Of a stretch of DNA of 64,000 bases, positions 1 through 61,600 are shown one piece after another (within the stretch, counting starts at the first letter, position 1; each line of letters starts with the position of its first letter). Made by a program: the position numbers and the translations under genes. Source of the DNA: Guillardia theta CCMP2712 (Eukaryota > Protista > Cryptophyta); NCBI RefSeq assembly GCF_000315625.1, contig NW_005434608.1, positions 1 through 64,000 of the forward strand. Direction: 5' to 3'. Under the pieces are notes generated by a model. That model had not been told where the DNA came from. It did not search any database and saw nothing but the letters and a program-made list of their open reading frames with translations.

Positions 1-92
1 AAGGGATCCTGCCTCAGATAAAGGGATCCTCGCCTCAGATAAAGGGATCCTACCCTCAGATAAAGGGATCCTTCCTCAGATAAAGGGATCCT
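1..92 (-). repeat. 20-bp tandem array (GCCTCAGATAAAGGGATCCT)n; probable 5' end of a distal telomeric element
   Basis: About 4.5 slightly variant copies, ending GGATCCT|CTAAACCC. This junction is identical to the one at 5512/5513. Confidence 0.9.
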
Positions 93-108
93 CTAAACCC
101 TAAACCCT
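93..108. repeat. Short internal telomeric tract (CCCTAAA)2
   Basis: ctaaaccctaaaccct lies between the 20-mer array and element 1. Confidence 0.9.
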
Positions 109-215
109 GAGATCATAGTCTAAAGAGGCGCTCGAGCACTGGGAGTACACGGCCTACAATGCGAACCCTGCTTCTGAGGCGTCTTTCTACTCTCTACTTC
201 TGCTGTCTTCTCTTG

Positions 216-430
216 GCTTCCTCAGCCTCAGTCAGGAGAGTTGCCTCTCCTCACCTTGGCCTTCGGTCACCACCTACTCTACCTCCATTCAGCTTCCTCA
301 GCCTCAGTCAGGAGAGTTGCCTCTCCTCACCTTGGCCTTCGGTCGCCACCTACTCGTCCTCCCTTCAGCTTCCTCAGCTTCAGTCAGGAGAGTTGCCTCT
401 CCTCACCTTGGCCTTCGGTCGCCTCCTACC
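216..430. repeat. 76-bp tandem repeat, about 2.8 copies, in the 3' region of element 1
   Basis: Units start at 216, 292 and 368. Each contains the hairpin AGGAGAG-TTGC-CTCTCCT. Confidence 0.9.
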
Positions 431-454
431 TTCTCTCCTTACCTTGGGCTCAGC

Positions 455-2629
455 TCAAGCTCGGTACGGGCTCGCCCCGTCTTCTTCCTCGCCCTCGCCT
501 TGCTCTTCCTCCATGTCTTCCTCTTCTTCGTCATCTTCCCTCATCTCCACTCGCAGTCGGTCCTTCTTGTCCACCTTCAGCGAGCAGGCCAGCACATGCA
601 TCTCTGCGAATTTACTCAGTGCTATGAACAGGAAGCTAAGAGATCGACGCTCTATGTCGTCGCTCTCCGCCTCCTGCTCAAGCTCAGCAGCTGCCGTTGC
701 CCGTGGCGAGAACGCGCTGCCCCTCCTTGCCTTCTTGCTCTCTCCTTGCACGCGAGTCCAGCGCTTGCTCTGCAGCCACTTCCCCAGCTTCTCCTTGAGC
801 GCGTTGCGTCCCACTCCCTGCTCCTCTGGCATCTTCGCCCACTCTCCCAGCGCCATGAACTCCAGGCTCCCCGGAGAGTAGAACGTGTCGTGGAGGTTGC
901 CAACGGCCTTGTCCAGGACCAGCTTGATCGGCTCGCTCGTCCCTGCCTCGTTCAAAGAAGCTGCATCTTCGATGACTGCTGACAGCTCGCTGACGAGCTG
1001 CATGTCCTCTTGGCTTGACGGAGATGCTGCCTCCATTGTGATCCTCTCCAGGTCTGTAAACTCCAGCCACTCTCCCTCGCTCTCCTCCTGTCGCTGCGCT
1101 GCGTCGCTGGTGCCCCGCTGACCAGCCGCCTCAGAGTCAGGCTCCTTGTCGAAGCCGACTGCTTCGAGCTTGGTTGCTGCGCCTTCGAGATAGAAGGGCA
1201 GCTCCTTCATCATGCGTCGAGCATCCTCCGTGGAGCCGAGGAGGATGCATAGCTTGGACCCGTTCCAGGACTTGGTGTTCAAATCCTCCTCCATGTCGAT
1301 GCCTTCAACGTTGATCTCGAGCCTGTTAGCGATCTCCAACAAGACTCTCTTGACTCTTGCGATAGACGTGTTGCCGCCGTTGCACAGCCCCTCCATCTCC
1401 TTCCTCGTGAAGCGACCAGATGCCGCCGTCGACTTGATGATGATCTTGATCTCCTTGCCGTCCTTGCCGCCTGCCTTCTTCTGCATCCTTGATGCCTTCT
1501 TCAACTTATTTCTGGACACAAAGCGATCAGCTGTCAACTCGACTGCGAGCGCCTCTCTGATCTTCGGGTCCTCGCTGAACAGAGTCAGGTGTACTCCCTC
1601 CATCGCTTCGCTCTCTCGGAAAGCTCGAAATGCTGTATCATTCGCCTCTGGGCAGCTCGAGGAGACGATCCACTCCACCTCCCTCTGTCTCCAGATGACG
1701 TTGGCCCCTACAGCGACGAAGCCTTTCTGACCTAAGCCTTTGTGGACTTGCTGTCCTGGCGCCCCAGCGACCAGCATGCCTGCCAGCGGCTGGAGTTGGA
1801 CCGCTGCAAGGGACTGGCGCAGCAGCTGATAGCGATAGACGGCAGCTATCTCAGCCGTTGTCATGCCGCCCAAGGTTAACAGGTGGGTCAGCTCTGCCAA
1901 GCTGCCCCCTTTGCCCCAGGGTCCTCTCTTGGCTCGAATCTTGAAAGATCGATCGTGCACGATGCTCACATGTACAGCTGTGAACTTGCGACCATCGATC
2001 GCGAAGTCCTCTCTTCCCTGCCAGAGCTTCTCCGCTTGTGCATTTCGGAGGAAGGAAACAGTCACCGGGATCTCCTCAGCACTCGCTATCTCGGGTCTAT
2101 ACGGAGCCTTCCACATGATTGCTTTACTCTCTTGCACTGAGTCTACGATCAGTCCGATCTCTTCGAATTTCTTCTTTAGCTTTTCTTCATGGTTGACATA
2201 CACCGAGGAGATGCCCAGGAGAGTCATGGAGATGAAGGAAGTTACCTCGTTGCCTGCTGAGGCGGTGTATGTCTCGACCTTCTCCTTCTTGGCTTCCTCA
2301 ATCTGCTGCATAAACCACTCTCTGGATGCGTCACTCCATCCAGTCATCGCTTCTTGCAGAAGCTCACGTCGTGCCTGCTGACATGTCGAGCGGATGGCTT
2401 CTGCGATAGCGTCGGGGGTGCATCCCTCCACAGCCTTGCAAGCCTGGGCTGTCCTGCTGTTCGGATAACGCTTCGCGAAGCTCTTCACCCTCTCGACGAG
2501 ATCAGCTTCGAGGACAGAGGCATCCACAAGTCCGCTCTGCGTGTATTGGCATGATCTCCGATACAGCAGTTTGCGAACATTTTCATCATACTGAAGAACC
2601 ATACTTAGAAAGCTATTTGAAGTATACAA
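455..2629 (-). CDS. ORF1/gag-like protein of element 1 (RRM-like modules, acidic C-terminus), 5'-truncated
   Basis: 724-aa intronless ORF. It shares blocks such as RAKRGPWGKGGSLAEL, FRESEAMEGVHLTL and RKEME..C.GGNTSI.RVKR with ORF 3485-5281. No RT or endonuclease motif was seen. Confidence 0.65.
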   Translation of the reverse strand: MYTSNSFLSMVLQYDENVRKLLYRRSCQYTQSGLVDASVLEADLVERVKSFAKRYPNSRTAQACKAVEGCTPDAIAEAIRSTCQQARRELLQEAMTGWSDASREWFMQQIEEAKKEKVETYTASAGNEVTSFISMTLLGISSVYVNHEEKLKKKFEEIGLIVDSVQESKAIMWKAPYRPEIASAEEIPVTVSFLRNAQAEKLWQGREDFAIDGRKFTAVHVSIVHDRSFKIRAKRGPWGKGGSLAELTHLLTLGGMTTAEIAAVYRYQLLRQSLAAVQLQPLAGMLVAGAPGQQVHKGLGQKGFVAVGANVIWRQREVEWIVSSSCPEANDTAFRAFRESEAMEGVHLTLFSEDPKIREALAVELTADRFVSRNKLKKASRMQKKAGGKDGKEIKIIIKSTAASGRFTRKEMEGLCNGGNTSIARVKRVLLEIANRLEINVEGIDMEEDLNTKSWNGSKLCILLGSTEDARRMMKELPFYLEGAATKLEAVGFDKEPDSEAAGQRGTSDAAQRQEESEGEWLEFTDLERITMEAASPSSQEDMQLVSELSAVIEDAASLNEAGTSEPIKLVLDKAVGNLHDTFYSPGSLEFMALGEWAKMPEEQGVGRNALKEKLGKWLQSKRWTRVQGESKKARRGSAFSPRATAAAELEQEAESDDIERRSLSFLFIALSKFAEMHVLACSLKVDKKDRLRVEMREDDEEEEDMEEEQGEGEEEDGASPYRA

Positions 2630-2713
2630 ACCTCTCGCTTGCAGCTTCCTTGGCGCCCTGGCAGCTTCCCCTACACCACGCGTGCAGCCATGGTGCCTGA
2701 ATAACCGGCGCTG

Positions 2714-2773
2714 CCTAAACCCTAAACCCTAAACCCTAAACCCTAAACCCTAAACCCTAAACCCTAAACCCTA
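2714..2773. repeat. Internal telomeric tract (CCCTAAA) about 8 copies
   Basis: Perfect CCCTAAA repeats between elements 1 and 2. Confidence 0.97.
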
Positions 2774-3326
2774 GTAGTAGTAGTAGTTGAGTTTATTAGA
2801 ATGCTAGGTAGTTTGCATGGTTTGTTATCACCTTGCACTATTCTAGTCTAACAGGGATCTCGTGACCTGGCAGTTCGGCCCGACTTGGCTGGCCCTTATG
2901 GCAGCCGTGCTTCTGCTCTGCTCCCTCCTCTGCTATACTTCAGTGGTCTTCCCCGGCCTCAGCCAGTGGAGTTTCCTCCGCCGGCCTTGGTCTGGGTCGT
3001 CCGTGCTTTCAACTTGTGTTGCTTCCTCGGCTCCGACACCCCTTGACGGTCTCGGCCGGCCTTCGGCCAGTGAGTGGATGAAGGATGGGTTGGTAGGTGG
3101 AATGCGTATGGGTCCCTGGGACTCACGTCCCTTCCCCGGGGCCTCGGTCCGGACCGGGCCCGAGAGCCCGGCCGGCCTCCGCCCGGCCTCCTCCTCCCGG
3201 CCCCCCTCCCCCTCTCCCACCGGCTTACCTGCCCTTACCTTCGTTGCTTGCCCCATGTCCACCTCATTTATTTCTTCCTCCTTCCCCCCATGGGGCCAAC
3301 AGCTCCGCTCCGCCTCTTGTCCACCT

Positions 3327-5281
3327 CTAAGACTTGACTCGAGCCTCAAGCGCGCGAGGGGCCTGCACCGGCCTCCTCCTCCTCGCCCTCGCCCTCCTCA
3401 GCCTCCATGTCGACTTCCTCCCTCATCATCAGCCGCAGTCGGTCTTGCTTGTCGACCTTGCCCGTGCAGCTCAACCCATGGTTCTCAGCAAATAAGAAAC
3501 AAGAGGCTTACAGATCGACTCTCGATGTCATCGCTCTCGGCCTCCTGCTCGAGCGCATCAGTCGCTGCTGCCCTTGGAGAGAAGGCGCTGCCCCTCCTCG
3601 CTGCCTTGTTCCCTTGCACCCGAGTCCAGCGCTGCTCGCCGAGGTACGCTCTGAGCTTTTCTTTCAACATGTTTCGCTTCGATCCCAGCGTCGGCGTGGC
3701 TGCCCAAGCTCCGAGCGTCATGAACTCCACGTTGCCCGGCGAGCAGAAGGTGTCATGCAGCTTGCCAACACTCTTGTCTAGCTCCAGAGAGATCGGCTTG
3801 CCAGCTAGCAGCTCCTCCTCTGATGTCTCCAAGAGCATCGTCGAGAGGTCGACCAAGACCTGTTGATCGACTGGCCCTGACGGCGACGCTGCTTCCATGG
3901 TGATCCTGTCGATGTCGCTGAGCTCCAGCCATCCAGCGCCTTGCTGCTGCCCTTGGGGCTCTTGGGCTTGCTCCTCGCTGCTCGGGCTCCTCTCCTCCTC
4001 ATGCTGAGGCCCGTTGAGCTTGAACCCCACCGCTTCGAGCTTGACTTCCAGGATCCCTTCCAAGTAAAAGGGCATGTCGTCCATCAGGCGTCGAGCGTCT
4101 GCCTTGGTCGCCAGGGAGAGAGCTATCGAGCTTCCGTCCCAGCTGAGCGTGTCACGATCCTCCTCGACCTCGACGCTGACCGGCGTCACGCCTATCCTTC
4201 TTGCTAACTCCAACATGGCTCGCTTGACTCTCGTGATCGATGTGTTACCTCCTCCGCACAGCGCTTCCATCTCCTTCCTCGAGAAGCGGCCTGTGCTCAT
4301 GCTTGACCTCGACTTGATCTGCACTCTGAAGCTGCTGCGCCCCGCATGATCTCTCTCGCGAAGTGCCCTCCTCTGCTTGGCGATCTTTCCCCTAGGAACG
4401 AAGGTGTCGGCTGTGAGCTCGACTGCAAACGTCTCTCTGAGCTTGGCGTCGTCGCTGATGAGAGTGAGATGCACCCCCTCCATCGCCTCGCTCTCTCTGA
4501 ACGAGGCCAAGGTCTGCTCGCAACTTGCCGTCGAAGGCGAGCTGAGCACCCACTCCAGCTCTTTTTGCTGGAGAGTTCCCGTACTTGCCCCAACAGCGAC
4601 ATACGTCTTCGGGCTCGGCCCCTTGCGACCTCTCTGCCCAGCACCCTGCACGAGCATGCCTGCAAGCGGTTGTACCTCTGCGGCTGCAAGAGATTGCGCA
4701 GATTTTTTCAATCTCATTTCGGGAGAACTTCCCTGACGGCACAGGAGAGGAGCTAGGAGCTGTGATAGCTCGGCAAGGCTCCCTCCCTTGCCCCAAGGTC
4801 CTCGCTTGGCTCGAAGCTTGAAGGACCGGTGCAGCGCCGTTGCTTCCATCTGCACTGAGAACCATTTCAGTATTTTGTCATTCTCTGAGACCAGTCCCAA
4901 AGTGACTCCTGCACGATCCTTTCCATGTCGATCGAATGCTTGAAGAACGATGTCCGCTGCTTCAAGGCTCGAGCACGTTGCGATCCAGTCGACCTCTCTG
5001 TTCTGGTTGACTGTTTCTATTCCTACCGCAGCGAACACCTTCTTTGGCGGTAGGTTCCTCTTGGGGGGGAGGTTCACTGTCATTCCCGCGTTTGGGATCA
5101 GATCAATGATCGCTAATCCCTGCTTCAGGCATAGCTGCCTGTAGATCTCACATATGTCACCTGTGCTCGAATCGTTGAGCCTCAGGAGTTGGGCCACCTC
5201 AGCTAGGATTCCAACTCTGCCCATGTTCTCCTTCTTTGGCCGCATCTTGAACGAGATCGGTGGGTTGGCTGCTGGGTTCAC
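3327..5281 (-). pseudogene. ORF1/gag-like protein of element 2, frameshifted near the C-terminus
   Basis: 598-aa ORF (3485-5281) homologous to the element 1 ORF. Homology resumes in another frame (FAENHGLSCTGKVDKQDRLR vs FAEMHVLACSLKVDKKDRLR), implying an 11-nt deletion near 3493. Confidence 0.65.
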
Positions 5282-5409
5282 TGCTAGAATTTATGGGGAG
5301 GTTTGAACCNNNNNNNNNNNNNNNNNNNNNNNNNNNNNNNNNNNNNNNNNNNNNNNNNNNNNNNNNNNNNNNNNNNNNNNNNNNNNNNNNNNNNNNNNNN
5401 NNNNNNNNN

Positions 5410-5512
5410 CCTGCCTCAGATAAAGGGATCCTGCCTCAGATAAAGGGATCCTGCCTCAGATAAAGGGATCCTGCCTCAGATAAAGGGATCCTGCCTCAGA
5501 TAAAGGGATCCT
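5410..5512 (-). repeat. 20-bp tandem array (at least 5 perfect copies)
   Basis: CCTGCCTCAGATAAAGGGAT repeated five times and running into the gap. Confidence 0.95.
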
Positions 5513-5574
5513 CTAAACCCTAAACCCTAAACCCTAAACCCTACACCCTAAACCGTAAATCCTAAACCCTAAAC
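5513..5574. repeat. Proximal telomeric tract with degenerate units
   Basis: CCCTAAA repeats with variants CCCTACA, CCGTAAA and TCCTAAA toward the inner edge, as expected for the oldest telomere portion. Confidence 0.95.
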
Positions 5575-7726
5575 ACTACTTTTTTTAAATTTTACCAAAA
5601 AAGAGAATCCTAAGCTTTTTTTGGAAGCGCCCTACATCTTGGGATACTCAATTTCTCAAATCGCTAGATCTGAGCGATCCGACCGTAGTCGGATGGTCGG
5701 CCGTGGCAAGGCTTCCGGCGTCCGGGCCCATGGCGGCCCATGGTCCTCCGACCACTTGGCTCGAAGCTTGCCAAGAAGGACCGGTCATGTGCAATGTTGA
5801 CCGTACTTCAGATGCCCGGCAGTCCGTTCTGCTACTCTCGGTTTGGCGGTTTCAGTCCAGTGCCAGGTGCCACGGTGAAGATCGGACTCTCGGATCAGGC
5901 CTGAGCTGCCCGGGCCGGGCCGCTGTCCGGCCGCACTTCAAGGCTTTCAAACCCGGAGCTACCCTATAACGTTTTTAAACTTCTCACTTCTCATGGTACC
6001 CCACCATTCGCCGCAGCTAAAAACATAATATACTGCATCCCTACCATGGGATTGAACATGAAATACACCCCCACCTTCCTATCTGAATGAACCGAATGAA
6101 CTACCTACCCCTTGCCCTACCACCGCACGCGCTAGTTTGAGATTCTGACCACCCGATTATTTCATCCCAACATCCCCAAAGACCCCTTCAAAAGCCATAT
6201 TTCAGACCGGTAGTATACTCTGTCCCCTAACAACGCAGTGGGATTCACAACTTTGTCCCCGACTACCCGTTCTTCAAAGACCCCAGTCCGGATATCTTGG
6301 GGGTGTTACCGCTGGTAGGGTCGGTGATTCTGGAGATGGAGAATGGAGAAACTGGCTGAGGGTGGGTATCTCTTTCAAAAAGTGGCTAGAACGAGGGAAA
6401 GGGGGGTAGAGATAGGCCGGAGGAGAGGTGGTTTGTCCTAAGGGGGTAGGGTGGTGGTAGGGTAGTATGCCATAGGGATGATCGCCTTGCACATTGCCGC
6501 TTTGCTCTCCTCTTCTCCTGTCCTGACTGCTGCTGTCTCGTCCTCAATCTTCACAAACTTCCTCTCGCTTCCCCCCTCATCCCCATCGTCCGTCCCCCTC
6601 CCGCTCTCCCCACTGCTCATTCACTCAAGCTCAACTGCCTCTCCTGCTTTTTCTTGCCCCTACTCCTTTTGCAGTTTCTTGAACGCTCTCCTGCACCACC
6701 TGCTTCTCCATCCAGTTCTGATTCTCAAAAACCTCAGAATATTGCATGATTGCATTGTTCTGCATTGTTCTGCTCCTGCTCCTCGTCCTCCACGTTCCTC
6801 ATGCTAGTCTTGCTCTTTATGGCGACAGCTGTCAGTAATCCATTCAATATGATGCACCTCTCCTGCTTCTGATTCTGTCCACCCTCAAATCTCTGGTGTT
6901 GTATCTTTTATAGTCCCCTGCGTTCTCTTGACCGCCCCCCCCGCATACCCCAAACCCTTCTTGCTTCTGCTCCTTCTTGTCTCATTATCATTTTGCCCTC
7001 ATTGCCTCGGCCGGCTTCCGCCTTGTGTTCTTGCTCATCCATATGTGCACGATCACCTATTACCCATGTCATGCTCAGGAACAAACACTTCTTCCTTCTT
7101 TAGCTTTCAAGTATCTCCACCCTCTTCGAGGGCTCGGGCTGAGTTGCCCACAGACGATCCTCATATGATATTCTCACCAACATTCTCGTCAAAACATGCT
7201 GATCACTCTGCTCGAAGTCCCAACAGAATCTTCCTCCATGACCTATCATATTGACCAGCTGATGGTACTGTGCAGATCTCACTCTATCTTATATGTCCTC
7301 TTCAAACAATCCAATGTCATGTCATTTCTTTGATTGAATGCCTCTTTAGATTCAAACTTTTTCTGTTCCTGTTTGCACTGGTTTAAGGCAGCTTGTTATG
7401 AATAGCATTCACCAGTGTTCTTGTACTTCTATCATTGCTGTTGATTATTCCACATGATTTGCAAGGCCCTGGGAATCCTGCTCCCTGCCGTTCCCTTAGT
7501 TCTTTTGGACTATACACTAACAAAAGGATTACAGCACCCGGCAGATAGCCTTCTGTATCCTGTTCTTGAGCGCCAACTTCAGCAGACCTGAGGTACATGC
7601 ATGCTTGTGTGCTGTGTCCGAGTGCCAAAATGATTGCTGAATACCAGGTTTCTGGCTAGAAGTGAATGGTTCAGCGGATCTTTGCTATCTAAACTTCGCT
7701 GTTGATATTCTTGTACTTGTCTTGCG

Positions 7727-58600: not shown

Positions 58601-61600
58601 AGTGAAAGCAAGGCTCGTGTTGACGTGCCTGACTCATCAGCAGGCGGAGGTTGAACAGCAGAAAGTGGATGCGATGAAGCAGGTAAGCCCACTGCCCTGA
58701 TCTGCTTACTGCAGAAGTTAAGAGCTCAACAGAAGCGAGCTGAGAATGAGAAACTGCGCGAAGAGATGAATCGCGACATGCAGGTAAGATGCTTGCCCTT
58801 GCTGCGGGAATTCCTGATGGTTCCGGAAGATGATGGAGATGAAGCTGAAGCAGCTCAAGGCCAAGAAAGATGCTGACGAGCGCATGAAGGTGAGCGAGTA
58901 TTTCCGTGTCCTCCTCCTCGACCTGGACCGCATCCTTCTCCTTCTCTCGCTCTCCTGGTCTCTTCCTCGTGCTCCATCTGATGGAACCTACAGCGGGAGA
59001 GGATGGCGCTGGCGAGGCAGAGGCAAGATAGCAATGCAGCACAGGTTCAGCAGGTGCCCACCTGAGACCTGCTGACGAGGACTTGCAGGCTGAGCAGCAG
59101 GTGGTGCAGAAGGAACCGCAACCTCAGAGGGTTCAGAACGTCCGGGACGTGAACCCGCTCTCCTCGCGGTCTTCCGCTGACGTCGACGAGTCGATTCAGA
59201 CCCCCGCGCCCTCCCACGCCGCCAACGTCTGCAAACCTTTCGGAGTATGCGAGAGCTTCCTTACCCCAGCGCAGCTTCCTGCACGCAAGGGCATCGTTCC
59301 CGCGCCTGTTCCTGACGTGCAGCAGGCGGAGAAGGTATCGTCCTACCCGCCCTCCTTGCTCTGTTGGGGTTGACGGCACAGCAGGGCCCTGAGTTTCGCA
59401 AGGACAAGTATCAGGACGCAAGAAACAGGTGCGAAAGGAGGCAGGAGAGGAATCTTGATCTCTCTAACGCCCTTGCCTTCAGACCGCAACAGCCTGTGCG
59501 GTATGTCGACAGCCGCGCCCCGCAAGCTGGAGAGCAGAAGGGAGGGTACAGGTCGATGCCCTCCCCCTCCTCTTCCTCCCACTTCCCCTCCTCTTCCTCC
59601 CCCTCCCCCTCCTCTTCCTCCCCCTCTCCCTCCTCTTACTTGAGCGACAGGTACATGGTGGAGAAACCTCCTGCTGTGCAGGTGGATCAGATCCGATACT
59701 CAGGTGAGTCACATCTCCCTCGACCTCTCCTGCTGATGCCAGCACCAGAGCCTCACTTCACTCCTCCTCTCTTCGCTCCGCCTCCACATCCTCCTCCCAA
59801 CCGGCTTCAGGTGAGGGGAGGGAGATGGGAAGCTTAAGGTTGGAGGAGTTGACGCAGTGTAGGTTCTACACACTCCTGTCAATGGCGTATACGGGAACAA
59901 TGGGGACTTCTTTGGTGCGGATGGCATCGGTAGGAAAAAGGCGATGGAGTTGAAGCTGCTGATCCTTGAGCAGGAGCAGACTTGATCAGCAGGCAGAAGG
60001 AGCTTGACAGAATGCATGTGAGTGCGAGGGAGAAGGAGAAGGAGGCAGGGAGATGGTGGGAGGGGTTGGGGGGCGCGGGGGGGGGGGGGAAACTTCAAGA
60101 TACACTTAATAAAACAAGAAACAAAAAAAGCGAGAAATGAGGAGGGCCAGGAAATGAGCCTAAAGAGCCTGTTGACTTAACGGTCACACAAGATGGAGTA
60201 TTTGACTCATTCGATCTCTTCGTGGTGAGAACTGGAGGAGGGACGAGAACAAATCANNNNNNNNNNNNNNNNNNNNNNNNNNNNNNNNNNNNNNNNNNNN
60301 NNNNNNNNNNNNNNNNNNNNNNNNNNNNNNNNNNNNNNNNNNNNNNNNNNNNNNNNGAGAGGGGGCGTCAGCGGACCAAGGCAAGGAACGGAGGCGCCTG
60401 ATCCGATCCCCCGTCGGGACTCATTTATTCCCCCCTAGTAGGACTTGCGATGTAACTCATTTGAGTGCGAGATTTCCACAGCACCAGGGCAATAGGGGAG
60501 TGAATCAGGGGGGGGGGGGGGGGGGGGGTTCTTTCGACTTCTCATCATTTCTCCGCGTCTTACAGGCAAGGCAGCAAGTAGCCCAACAAACGCAGCAAGA
60601 GATGCAGGTGCAGCGATCTCCTCTTCCTCCTCCCTCTCCTCCTACCTCTCCTTCTCCCTCTCCTCCTCCTCCTCCTCCTCCTCCTCCTCCTCCTCCTCCT
60701 CTCCTCCTCCTCCCCCTCTTCCATCTTCCTCTCCCTTTCCTCCTCCTCCTCCTCCTCCTCCTCCCTCTCCTTCTCCTCCCTCTCCTCCTCCTCCCTCTCC
60801 TCGCCTTCCTCTCAACGTCTGCGCACAGGAGTTTCAAATGACGGTGCATCGCATCTCCAAGGTTTCGCTTGCTCCCGCTAAGCTCGACCTCTGATGGACT
60901 TGCAGGCCATCGGATCGTCTGCAGTCTCCAGGCCTATGATGATCCAAGCGGAGGTTGCCTCCTCCTGAACTCCTCCCCCTCCTCCCCCTCCCCCTCCATC
61001 GCCCTTCTCATCTGCTGCTCCTGTCCTCTCCCTTGGCTATCTCCGCCCGCTGAGATGCTGAGCAGGTGGGTGCCAAGATCTCAGAGCGCGATCGCCTCCT
61101 CCGCCAGGTTCTTTCGTCCTCCCCTCTGACCCCTCTGACCGGCCCCATCAGCGTCAGCAGAGCGACGCTCGTCGAATGCGCAAGGCAGGAGGGCAGGAGC
61201 CATCGGTCCGCCTCTTCGGTGACGTGGCGTACGAGGGAGGGCTCTACTCCCCTCAGGTGCTCCCCCTCCTCCATCCCGCTCCCGCCTCAACCCGCTGGCA
61301 GCGCGGCAAGGCGTACATGAACAACGGGGATGAAGGCATCGAAGAGGAGATCGAGGTGAGGGAGGAGGAGAGAGGGAGGAGGAGAGTGGGAGAGAGGCGA
61401 GGAGGAGTCTGACTGAGGTCACGGCAGGAGTACGTGCATGCGGCTCCGTCAAGGTACTCGCCTAGCGAGGAGATCGACGAGCAGCTGCTCTACTACGATG
61501 AGGTGATTTTGGTGGGGTCGTGTGACCTGCTGATGTGGAATGCAGGAGGAGGCAAACTTGGAGCAGGAAGTCGCTCACCGCACGCTGAAGATCCAGGTAG

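Follow-up and report, generated by a model that had tools for sequence, protein, structure and literature searches.

Chromosome-end arrays of the cryptophyte Guillardia theta, very probably built by a two-component retrotransposon family that targets telomere repeats

Few lineages are known to harbour retrotransposons that target telomeres; they comprise insects, Giardia, Chlorella, some fungi, and rotifers. SART1 and TRAS1 of Bombyx mori are long interspersed nuclear elements (LINEs) of the R1 clade that are specific for telomere repeats; in SART1, the sense strand runs with the G-rich strand, and the second open reading frame (ORF2) starts right after the ORF1 stop (UAAUG). In Drosophila, the gag-only element HeT-A outnumbers the reverse transcriptase (RT)-coding partner that it needs, TART/TAHRE, and head-to-tail arrays form the chromosome end. 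The MoTeR1 and MoTeR2 elements of Magnaporthe oryzae are likewise an RT-coding element and a nonautonomous partner that form head-to-tail arrays in telomere repeats and carry variable short tandem repeats at their 5' ends; MoTeR1 encodes a restriction-like (CRE-like) endonuclease, and MoTeR2 is not known to have an ORF1 homologue. Algal LINEs with a large ORF2 include Dualen/RandI of Chlamydomonas, where Dualen combines an APE endonuclease with further domains, and the telomeric Zepp of Chlorella, which has poly(A) tails and nests in itself, not in telomere repeats. Here we describe an array of LINE-like units at the left end of contig C66 of Guillardia theta CCMP2712. The first 64 kb of this contig are referred to as the window, and the genome searched comprises 87.1 Mb in 669 contigs.

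We hold with high confidence that positions 1 to 5578 of the window form the inner portion of an array at a chromosome end and that this array is the product of a two-component family of non-long terminal repeat retrotransposons (LINEs) that targets telomere repeats. The first-pass annotation had proposed a telomere-repeat-specific, nonautonomous, ORF1-only LINE-like family beside telomerase repeats, a proposal now supported by the positions of the copies and by a partner with APE and RT domains. The system may be likened, by its features, to SART1/TRAS1 in its targeting and to HeT-A and MoTeR2 in its RT-less partner. With SART1/TRAS1 it shares an APE-type LINE with ORF1 and ORF2, fixed-phase insertion in telomerase repeats, coexistence with telomerase, and copies that are mostly full length. 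With HeT-A and its partners, it shares a gag-only element that is more numerous than its RT-coding partner, in head-to-tail arrays at the chromosome end; with the MoTeR pair, head-to-tail arrays in telomere repeats, an RT-coding element with a nonautonomous partner, and variable short tandem repeats at the 5' end; and with the algal LINEs, a large ORF2, an APE endonuclease combined with further domains (Dualen), and accumulation at telomeres (Zepp). Cryptophytes would thus be a new lineage for a rare phenomenon, with chromosome ends built from telomerase repeats plus a two-part LINE system that combines SART-like insertion with a HeT-A-like gag-only partner outnumbering the RT element. No description of such a two-part system was found in the literature searched, which did not extend to Repbase or subscription journals.

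Read from the centromere side outward, the array begins with a degenerate telomere tract (positions 5513 to 5578; 9.4 repeats, 88% matches), the innermost and oldest one, which adjoins single-copy DNA. There follow a perfect 20-mer tandem array of 5.2 copies (5410 to 5512), an assembly gap of 100 N (5310 to 5409), element 2 (2788 to 5309) with its tail (2772 to 2787), a perfect telomere tract of 8.6 repeats (2714 to 2771), element 1 (112 to 2713), a short tract of about two telomere repeats (93 to 111), and a 20/21-mer tandem array of 4.5 copies (1 to 92) that is cut by the contig end. Tandem Repeats Finder delimited both 20-mer arrays and the perfect tract, and by this analysis and the sequence itself every part named in the first-pass annotation was found in its place. 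Apart from the strandless gap, all of these features are assigned to the minus strand. This is also the coding sense of both elements, so that the G-rich strand runs on directly into their sense strand, with the 3' ends pointing toward the contig, that is, chromosome, end.

Both elements are ORF1-only units. Element 1, which belongs to family A, has an ORF1 of 715 amino acids (aa) at 455 to 2602, starting from the ATG at 2602; element 2, of the family B type, has an ORF of 598 aa (3485 to 5281) and a 3' untranslated region (UTR) at 2788 to 3484. The two ORFs are homologous, as had been proposed, with 51% identity over 460 aa (E = 4e-137). A Pfam search of both returned no domain, and no remnant of an RT or ORF2 was found within the array units of the window, in agreement with the earlier remark that no RT separates ORF and tail. 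The ORF1 of the autonomous element described below aligns end to end with that of element 1 (28% identity over 699 aa, E = 9e-80), which identifies the window ORFs as genuine LINE ORF1 homologues.

A six-frame search of the genome (672 first-look candidates) yielded at least 62 copies of the family A ORF at 97 to 100% identity, and about 35 copies of family B were found at 76 to 97% identity. As the first-pass annotation had anticipated for a telomere-specific family, the copies lie almost only at contig ends, and they do so in a single orientation. Thirty of the 31 minus-strand family A copies start no more than 24 kb from the first base of their contig, against a chance expectation of about 18% (binomial P of about 2e-21). 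Of the 12 plus-strand copies on contigs whose length is known (C15, C19, C45, C46, C65, C72, C83, and C187), 11 are no more than 30 kb away from the last base. At least 44 contigs carry such arrays.

The longer, RT-coding element envisaged in the first-pass annotation is present in the same arrays and encodes an APE endonuclease along with the RT. This autonomous element is about 10 kb long; its ORF1 ends in a TAA stop ahead of an ORF2 of about 2,500 aa, and it shares the arrays and orientation of the ORF1-only units at other contig ends. At one locus on contig C15 (L040), the order is a family A unit, its tail, two telomere repeats, 29 copies of a 20-mer, an ORF1 of 703 aa, and an open ORF2 frame of 2,503 aa. 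Of the ORF2 of the main autonomous family, which continues for about 850 aa after the RT, the first 1,169 residues were read. In this part, residues 450 to 636 match the Exo_endo_phos domain above the cutoff (E = 2e-8), with a weak match of the endonuclease to that of L1 in the PDB, and the RT follows directly (RVT_1, 126 bits at C15:1041992). The best two groups of RVT_1 matches lie at contig ends, obey the same orientation rule, and have open frames of up to 2,504 aa; RT and ORF2 copies as a whole follow the end-and-orientation rule of the ORF1-only units. They fall into at least three ORF2 families, one with 96 to 100% identity and others with 36 to 45%. A LINE-type RT with an APE domain N-terminal to it marks the whole system as an APE-type non-LTR retrotransposon. 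In these respects it differs from MoTeR, since its endonuclease is of the APE type and its nonautonomous partner keeps ORF1. Unlike in SART1/TRAS1, ORF2 reaches some 2,500 aa and has a weak, sub-threshold match to the Ulp1-like Peptidase_C48 domain (residues 148 to 259). The G-strand sense and the close spacing of ORF1 and ORF2 resemble those of SART1. The spacing can be read at positions 6489 to 6503 of L040, where ORF1 ends in TAA and the first ATG of ORF2 follows 9 nucleotides (nt) later, in frame, a layout that suggests termination-reinitiation or readthrough.

Units elsewhere in the genome have a regular 5' anatomy. In 35 family A units at the loci examined, the unit bodies all begin at one common point, and the order leading into them is a telomere tract of 2 to 18 repeats, TTTAG(G), 0.5 to 40 tandem copies of a 19-nt monomer that occurs in two variants, a 6-codon upstream ORF (uORF), and the ORF. 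The uORF, between the monomer and the main ATG, is kept with both monomer variants and reads MAARVV in one and MAPRQV in the other. Other families carry their own monomer of 19 to 22 nt, the RT-coding element has a distinct one, and more occur at loci L003, L005, and L028. At L033 and L012, a short telomere tract is immediately followed by the 20-mer of the window, which there heads complete units. The 20-mer arrays thus form the 5' ends of units. They had earlier been listed as a separate component of the array; they are instead the variable 5' repeat of each unit, and positions 1 to 92 are the head of a third, more distal unit. Some units reiterate their first 22, 25 to 28, or 78 nt rather than 19, and the restart is always at nucleotide 1. 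These variable arrays of 19- to 22-nt monomers, together with the abundance of ORF1-only partners, set the G. theta elements apart from SART1/TRAS1.

The 3' ends are equally regular. At the 35 complete 3' ends, TAATAAACTC precedes (ATA)n (family A), (ACT)n (family B), or (AAT)n (a fragment of the RT family), a polyadenylation signal plus simple-repeat tail as in LINEs. In ORF1-only units, the 3' UTR ends in the shared motif TCTAATAAACTCA before the trinucleotide tail. Element 2 ends in the manner first reported for it, with AATAAA (complement at 2792 to 2797), contained in the shared 3' motif, before (CTA)5 on the sense strand, which is the (TAG)5 on the plus strand at 2772 to 2787. The tail passes through GGG into telomere repeats in one phase at 33 of the 35 ends, and the 5' ends of units follow TTTAG(G), also a fixed phase in the telomere repeat. 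Insertion inside telomere repeats in fixed phase and one orientation is what characterizes TRAS and SART elements. Two other TRAS/SART traits, a poly(A) tail and CCHC knuckles in ORF1, were not found: the tails are trinucleotide repeats, and ORF1 has no Pfam match and is predicted to contain an RRM-like domain instead. The tails and the insertion in telomere repeats also distinguish these units from Zepp. The number of telomere repeats and of 5' monomers differs at every junction, which argues for independent events and not for the copying of whole arrays.

Element 1 illustrates both ends. It had been interpreted as 5' truncated, its frame being open to the upstream telomeric junction, but the unit starts at the canonical 5' end of its family, with one copy of the family A monomer at about 2691 to 2713 and the conserved 6-codon uORF at 2671 to 2691. 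That the frame stays open to the junction simply reflects a 5' UTR free of stops in this reading frame. The ATG at 2691 was rejected as the start of the ORF, since it opens only the uORF. Element 1 is shortened at its 3' side instead, where it runs into two telomere repeats about 68 nt short of the canonical end and thus has neither AATAAA nor the (ATA)n tail. Its 3' UTR contains 2.8 copies of a 76-bp tandem repeat (216 to 429), whose copy number differs among family copies; this variation explains several "short" BLAST matches.

Copies with a common 3' end and variable 5' ends, a pattern the first-pass annotation had looked to as support, are seen for the 3' region of the RT-coding family. 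In eight elements, the RT is followed at a constant distance of about 3.15 kb by a 637-nt fragment comprising the end of ORF2, the 3' UTR, and the (AAT)n tail. At other places, copies of this fragment share its 3' end (about 620 to 637) and start at 113, 165, 211, 240, 268, 341, 343, 354, 386, 418, or 451. Of these 5'-truncated copies, two were read in sequence: one is flanked by telomere tracts, and the other borders on unique DNA. At L005, a family A copy of 150 nt that keeps its whole tail likewise lies between telomere tracts. At L012, mini-units join the 5' monomer to the last 35 nt of the 3' UTR and tail, and a three-part chimera of different families is also present; template switching by the RT would produce both. 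There are also abortive-looking units that keep only 100 to 150 nt of their 5' end. A different kind of junction joins telomere repeats, in varied registers, directly to unique DNA, to a gypsy-like pol gene, or to ORF1 units that break off at many different points. These direct joins are best read as erosion or breakage and telomerase healing, followed by a new unit. In the case of the pol gene (L003, positions 1 to 1400, contig C106), a Ty3/gypsy-like pol is cut inside its RNase H region and passes through telomere repeats into a family A unit, an arrangement that we interpret as the healing of a chromosome that had broken within another retrotransposon.

A nick in the C-rich strand at 5'-CCC^TAAA that primes complementary DNA (cDNA) synthesis on the tail would fit both the APE domain and the phase, which is fixed at either junction. 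We envisage that the ORF2 protein, acting in trans, would nick the C-rich telomere strand at this fixed phase and use the nick to prime cDNA synthesis, with the tail of the RNA of the element as the template. As a result, the sense strand would run with the G-strand, and the 3' end would face the chromosome tip. The 5' end would be joined after TTTAG(G), and template jumping or slippage of the RT would often reiterate the first 19 to 78 nt, giving rise to the variable 5' arrays. Between insertions, erosion and telomerase rehealing would leave short interstitial telomere tracts as well as units shortened at the 3' side, of which element 1 is an example. Each chromosome end would then be a record of cycles of erosion, telomerase healing, and insertion, and the 5' arrays may show how the 5' end of a LINE is joined.

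Several observations weigh against new insertion by retrotransposition as the source of the array. The target is a 7-nt tandem repeat, inside which target-site duplications are unreadable; the flanks are compatible with an overlap of 2 to 4 nt, which a repeat target cannot prove. The 5' end is complete in nearly all ORF1-only units, which is unusual for LINEs and would fit copying by recombination as well, and the 97 to 100% identity could reflect gene conversion and not recent transposition. The 3' end common to the partner and the ORF1-only units is seen only through the related RT-family 3' fragment. Gaps inside arrays make the number and order of units uncertain, and the case for new insertions and RNA ends is built on assembled sequence. 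Some of these points would be accommodated if the units formed an array like yeast Y', made up of normal, albeit retro-derived, subtelomeric genes and spread by recombination or break-induced replication from interstitial telomere tracts without ongoing retrotransposition. Interstitial tracts do lie between the units, as in yeast Y', and the units have one orientation, intact 5' ends, and 97 to 100% identity, and break-induced replication is also able to switch templates. We nevertheless consider this explanation unlikely: each junction has its own telomere-repeat count and 5' monomer structure, with no shared multiunit haplotypes; there are copies with intact tails and variable 5' truncation; the 3' ends lie a few nt past AATAAA and have family-specific trinucleotide tails; and an APE- and RT-coding partner with a homologous ORF1 occupies the same arrays. 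It would also leave the chimeras and the origin of the units unexplained. Recombination probably contributes to the spread of the arrays all the same, and it may homogenize the units.

Terminal addition in the manner of HeT-A or Athena, by reverse transcription onto the chromosome 3' overhang without an endonuclease nick, would account for the dominance of ORF1-only units, as in HeT-A, for their alternation with healed ends, and for the abortive-looking units that keep 100 to 150 nt of the 5' end. End-priming on sense RNA would give the opposite orientation, so that an antisense template would be needed; moreover, the partner encodes an APE endonuclease and the repeat phase is fixed at both junctions, and we regard this explanation as very improbable. 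On the same grounds, the analogy to HeT-A drawn in the first-pass annotation breaks down over orientation. A HeT-A-like element would have its 3' end toward the centromere and no endonuclease; in G. theta, the tails face the contig ends and the 3' end points to the chromosome tip, telomerase repeats lie between the units, and the partner has an endonuclease. An assembly artefact, with repeats collapsed or misjoined at contig ends, is hardly credible. There are N gaps inside arrays (positions 5310 to 5409 of the window, and at L030, L033, and L039), and scaffold C72 has arrays joined head to head across gaps, but the same architecture recurs on at least 44 contigs, each with different single-copy DNA joined to telomere repeats. 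Insertion by a telomere-repeat-targeting LINE system thus remains our preferred account.

As an extension of this account, we tentatively raise a joint idea that we think is possible but doubtful: that the 5' arrays are made anew at each insertion by telomerase-like stuttering of the RT from nucleotide 1, and that the ORF1-only units have been co-opted for end maintenance. The element RT would repeatedly copy the first nucleotides of its own RNA. If this were true, the co-opted units would work alongside telomerase and buffer erosion rather than being mere parasites.

The ORF1 protein is a lineage-restricted protein without a known domain. Its AlphaFold model is poor (mean pLDDT, 51), and the only confidently folded part is residues 382 to 487 of the element 1 protein, which in this model resembles RNA recognition motifs (RRMs; Z of 8 to 9.6, Foldseek E of about 0.01, TM up to 0.75). 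Such a part would suit an RNA-binding protein. Relatives were found among G. theta proteins, in a transcript filed under Heterocapsa arctica (99%), in a Hanusia phi transcript (37%), and in two further entries; the Heterocapsa-filed transcript is probably a cross-contamination of that transcriptome data set. Transcriptome collections made from poly(A)-selected RNA contain ORF1. In at least six studies, small contig sets guessed to be RNA held 73 to 78% of the element 1 words, and the sets also included in the search with the flank (X20, X22, and X23) held 1 to 8% of the words of the neighbouring stretch. The two-part system accounts for dozens of "hypothetical" proteins of G. theta as well as for scaffolds that break at their ends.

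Relatives of ORF2 are fewer. A search of representative proteins gave 25, all weak or fragmentary apart from one long protein of 2,578 aa, a metagenomic APE and RT protein. The RT of this protein shares 33% identity over about 500 aa with the G. theta RT and in turn matches R2 and L1 ORF2p in the PDB. Beyond its RT, the metagenomic protein has no match to the G. theta elements. Its gene sits on a 10.7-kb metagenome contig (L041) and is followed by a separate ORF of 622 aa with an RNase H domain; among the telomeric elements, no match to the PF00075 RNase H domain was found, which sets them apart from the algal LINEs Dualen/RandI and Zepp. A search for homologous proteins with the N-terminal part of ORF2 gave no match in the length range searched, and one with the metagenomic RT as the query gave fragments only.

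Element 2 adjoins the assembly gap, in or beyond which its 5' part is lost. Three relatives, two at L033 and one at L021, match it from position 5290 inward, extend the ORF upstream by about 217 codons, and continue through a 5' UTR into the same 20-mer array, whereas the last 19 nt before the gap (5291 to 5309) match none of them. The nominal 100-N gap at 5310 to 5409 thus probably hides about 0.7 kb (the 5' UTR and some 217 N-terminal codons), provided that element 2 has the usual unit structure; the other possibility is that two separate pieces were joined in the scaffold. On the simplest reading, the array at 5410 to 5512 is probably the head of element 2, and the same array-to-body arrangement occurs in a unit at L033. 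The ORF of element 2 contains the central ORF1 module twice, residues 1 to 147 resembling residues 148 to 300, and the duplicated module is 37% identical to the corresponding part of element 1. Residues 1 to 147 match the L033/L021 type (92% DNA identity) and the remainder matches family B, which suggests that the ORF is a chimera of two families.

A few features fall outside the regular arrangement. At L005 (positions 1 to 900, contig C244), a unit in inverted orientation faces the array head to head. On scaffold C72 (L031 and L033), two oppositely oriented telomeric arrays are joined across gaps, probably through a scaffolding misjoin. Inward of position 5578, the DNA of the window is single copy in the genome, apart from one 48-nt motif at the inner edge of the array (5600 to 5648). 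This motif recurs with 98% identity at internal positions on at least six other contigs (C74, C601, C276, C16, C14, and C11) and may be a small dispersed repeat. A further assembly gap of 100 N lies at positions 60257 to 60356 of the window.

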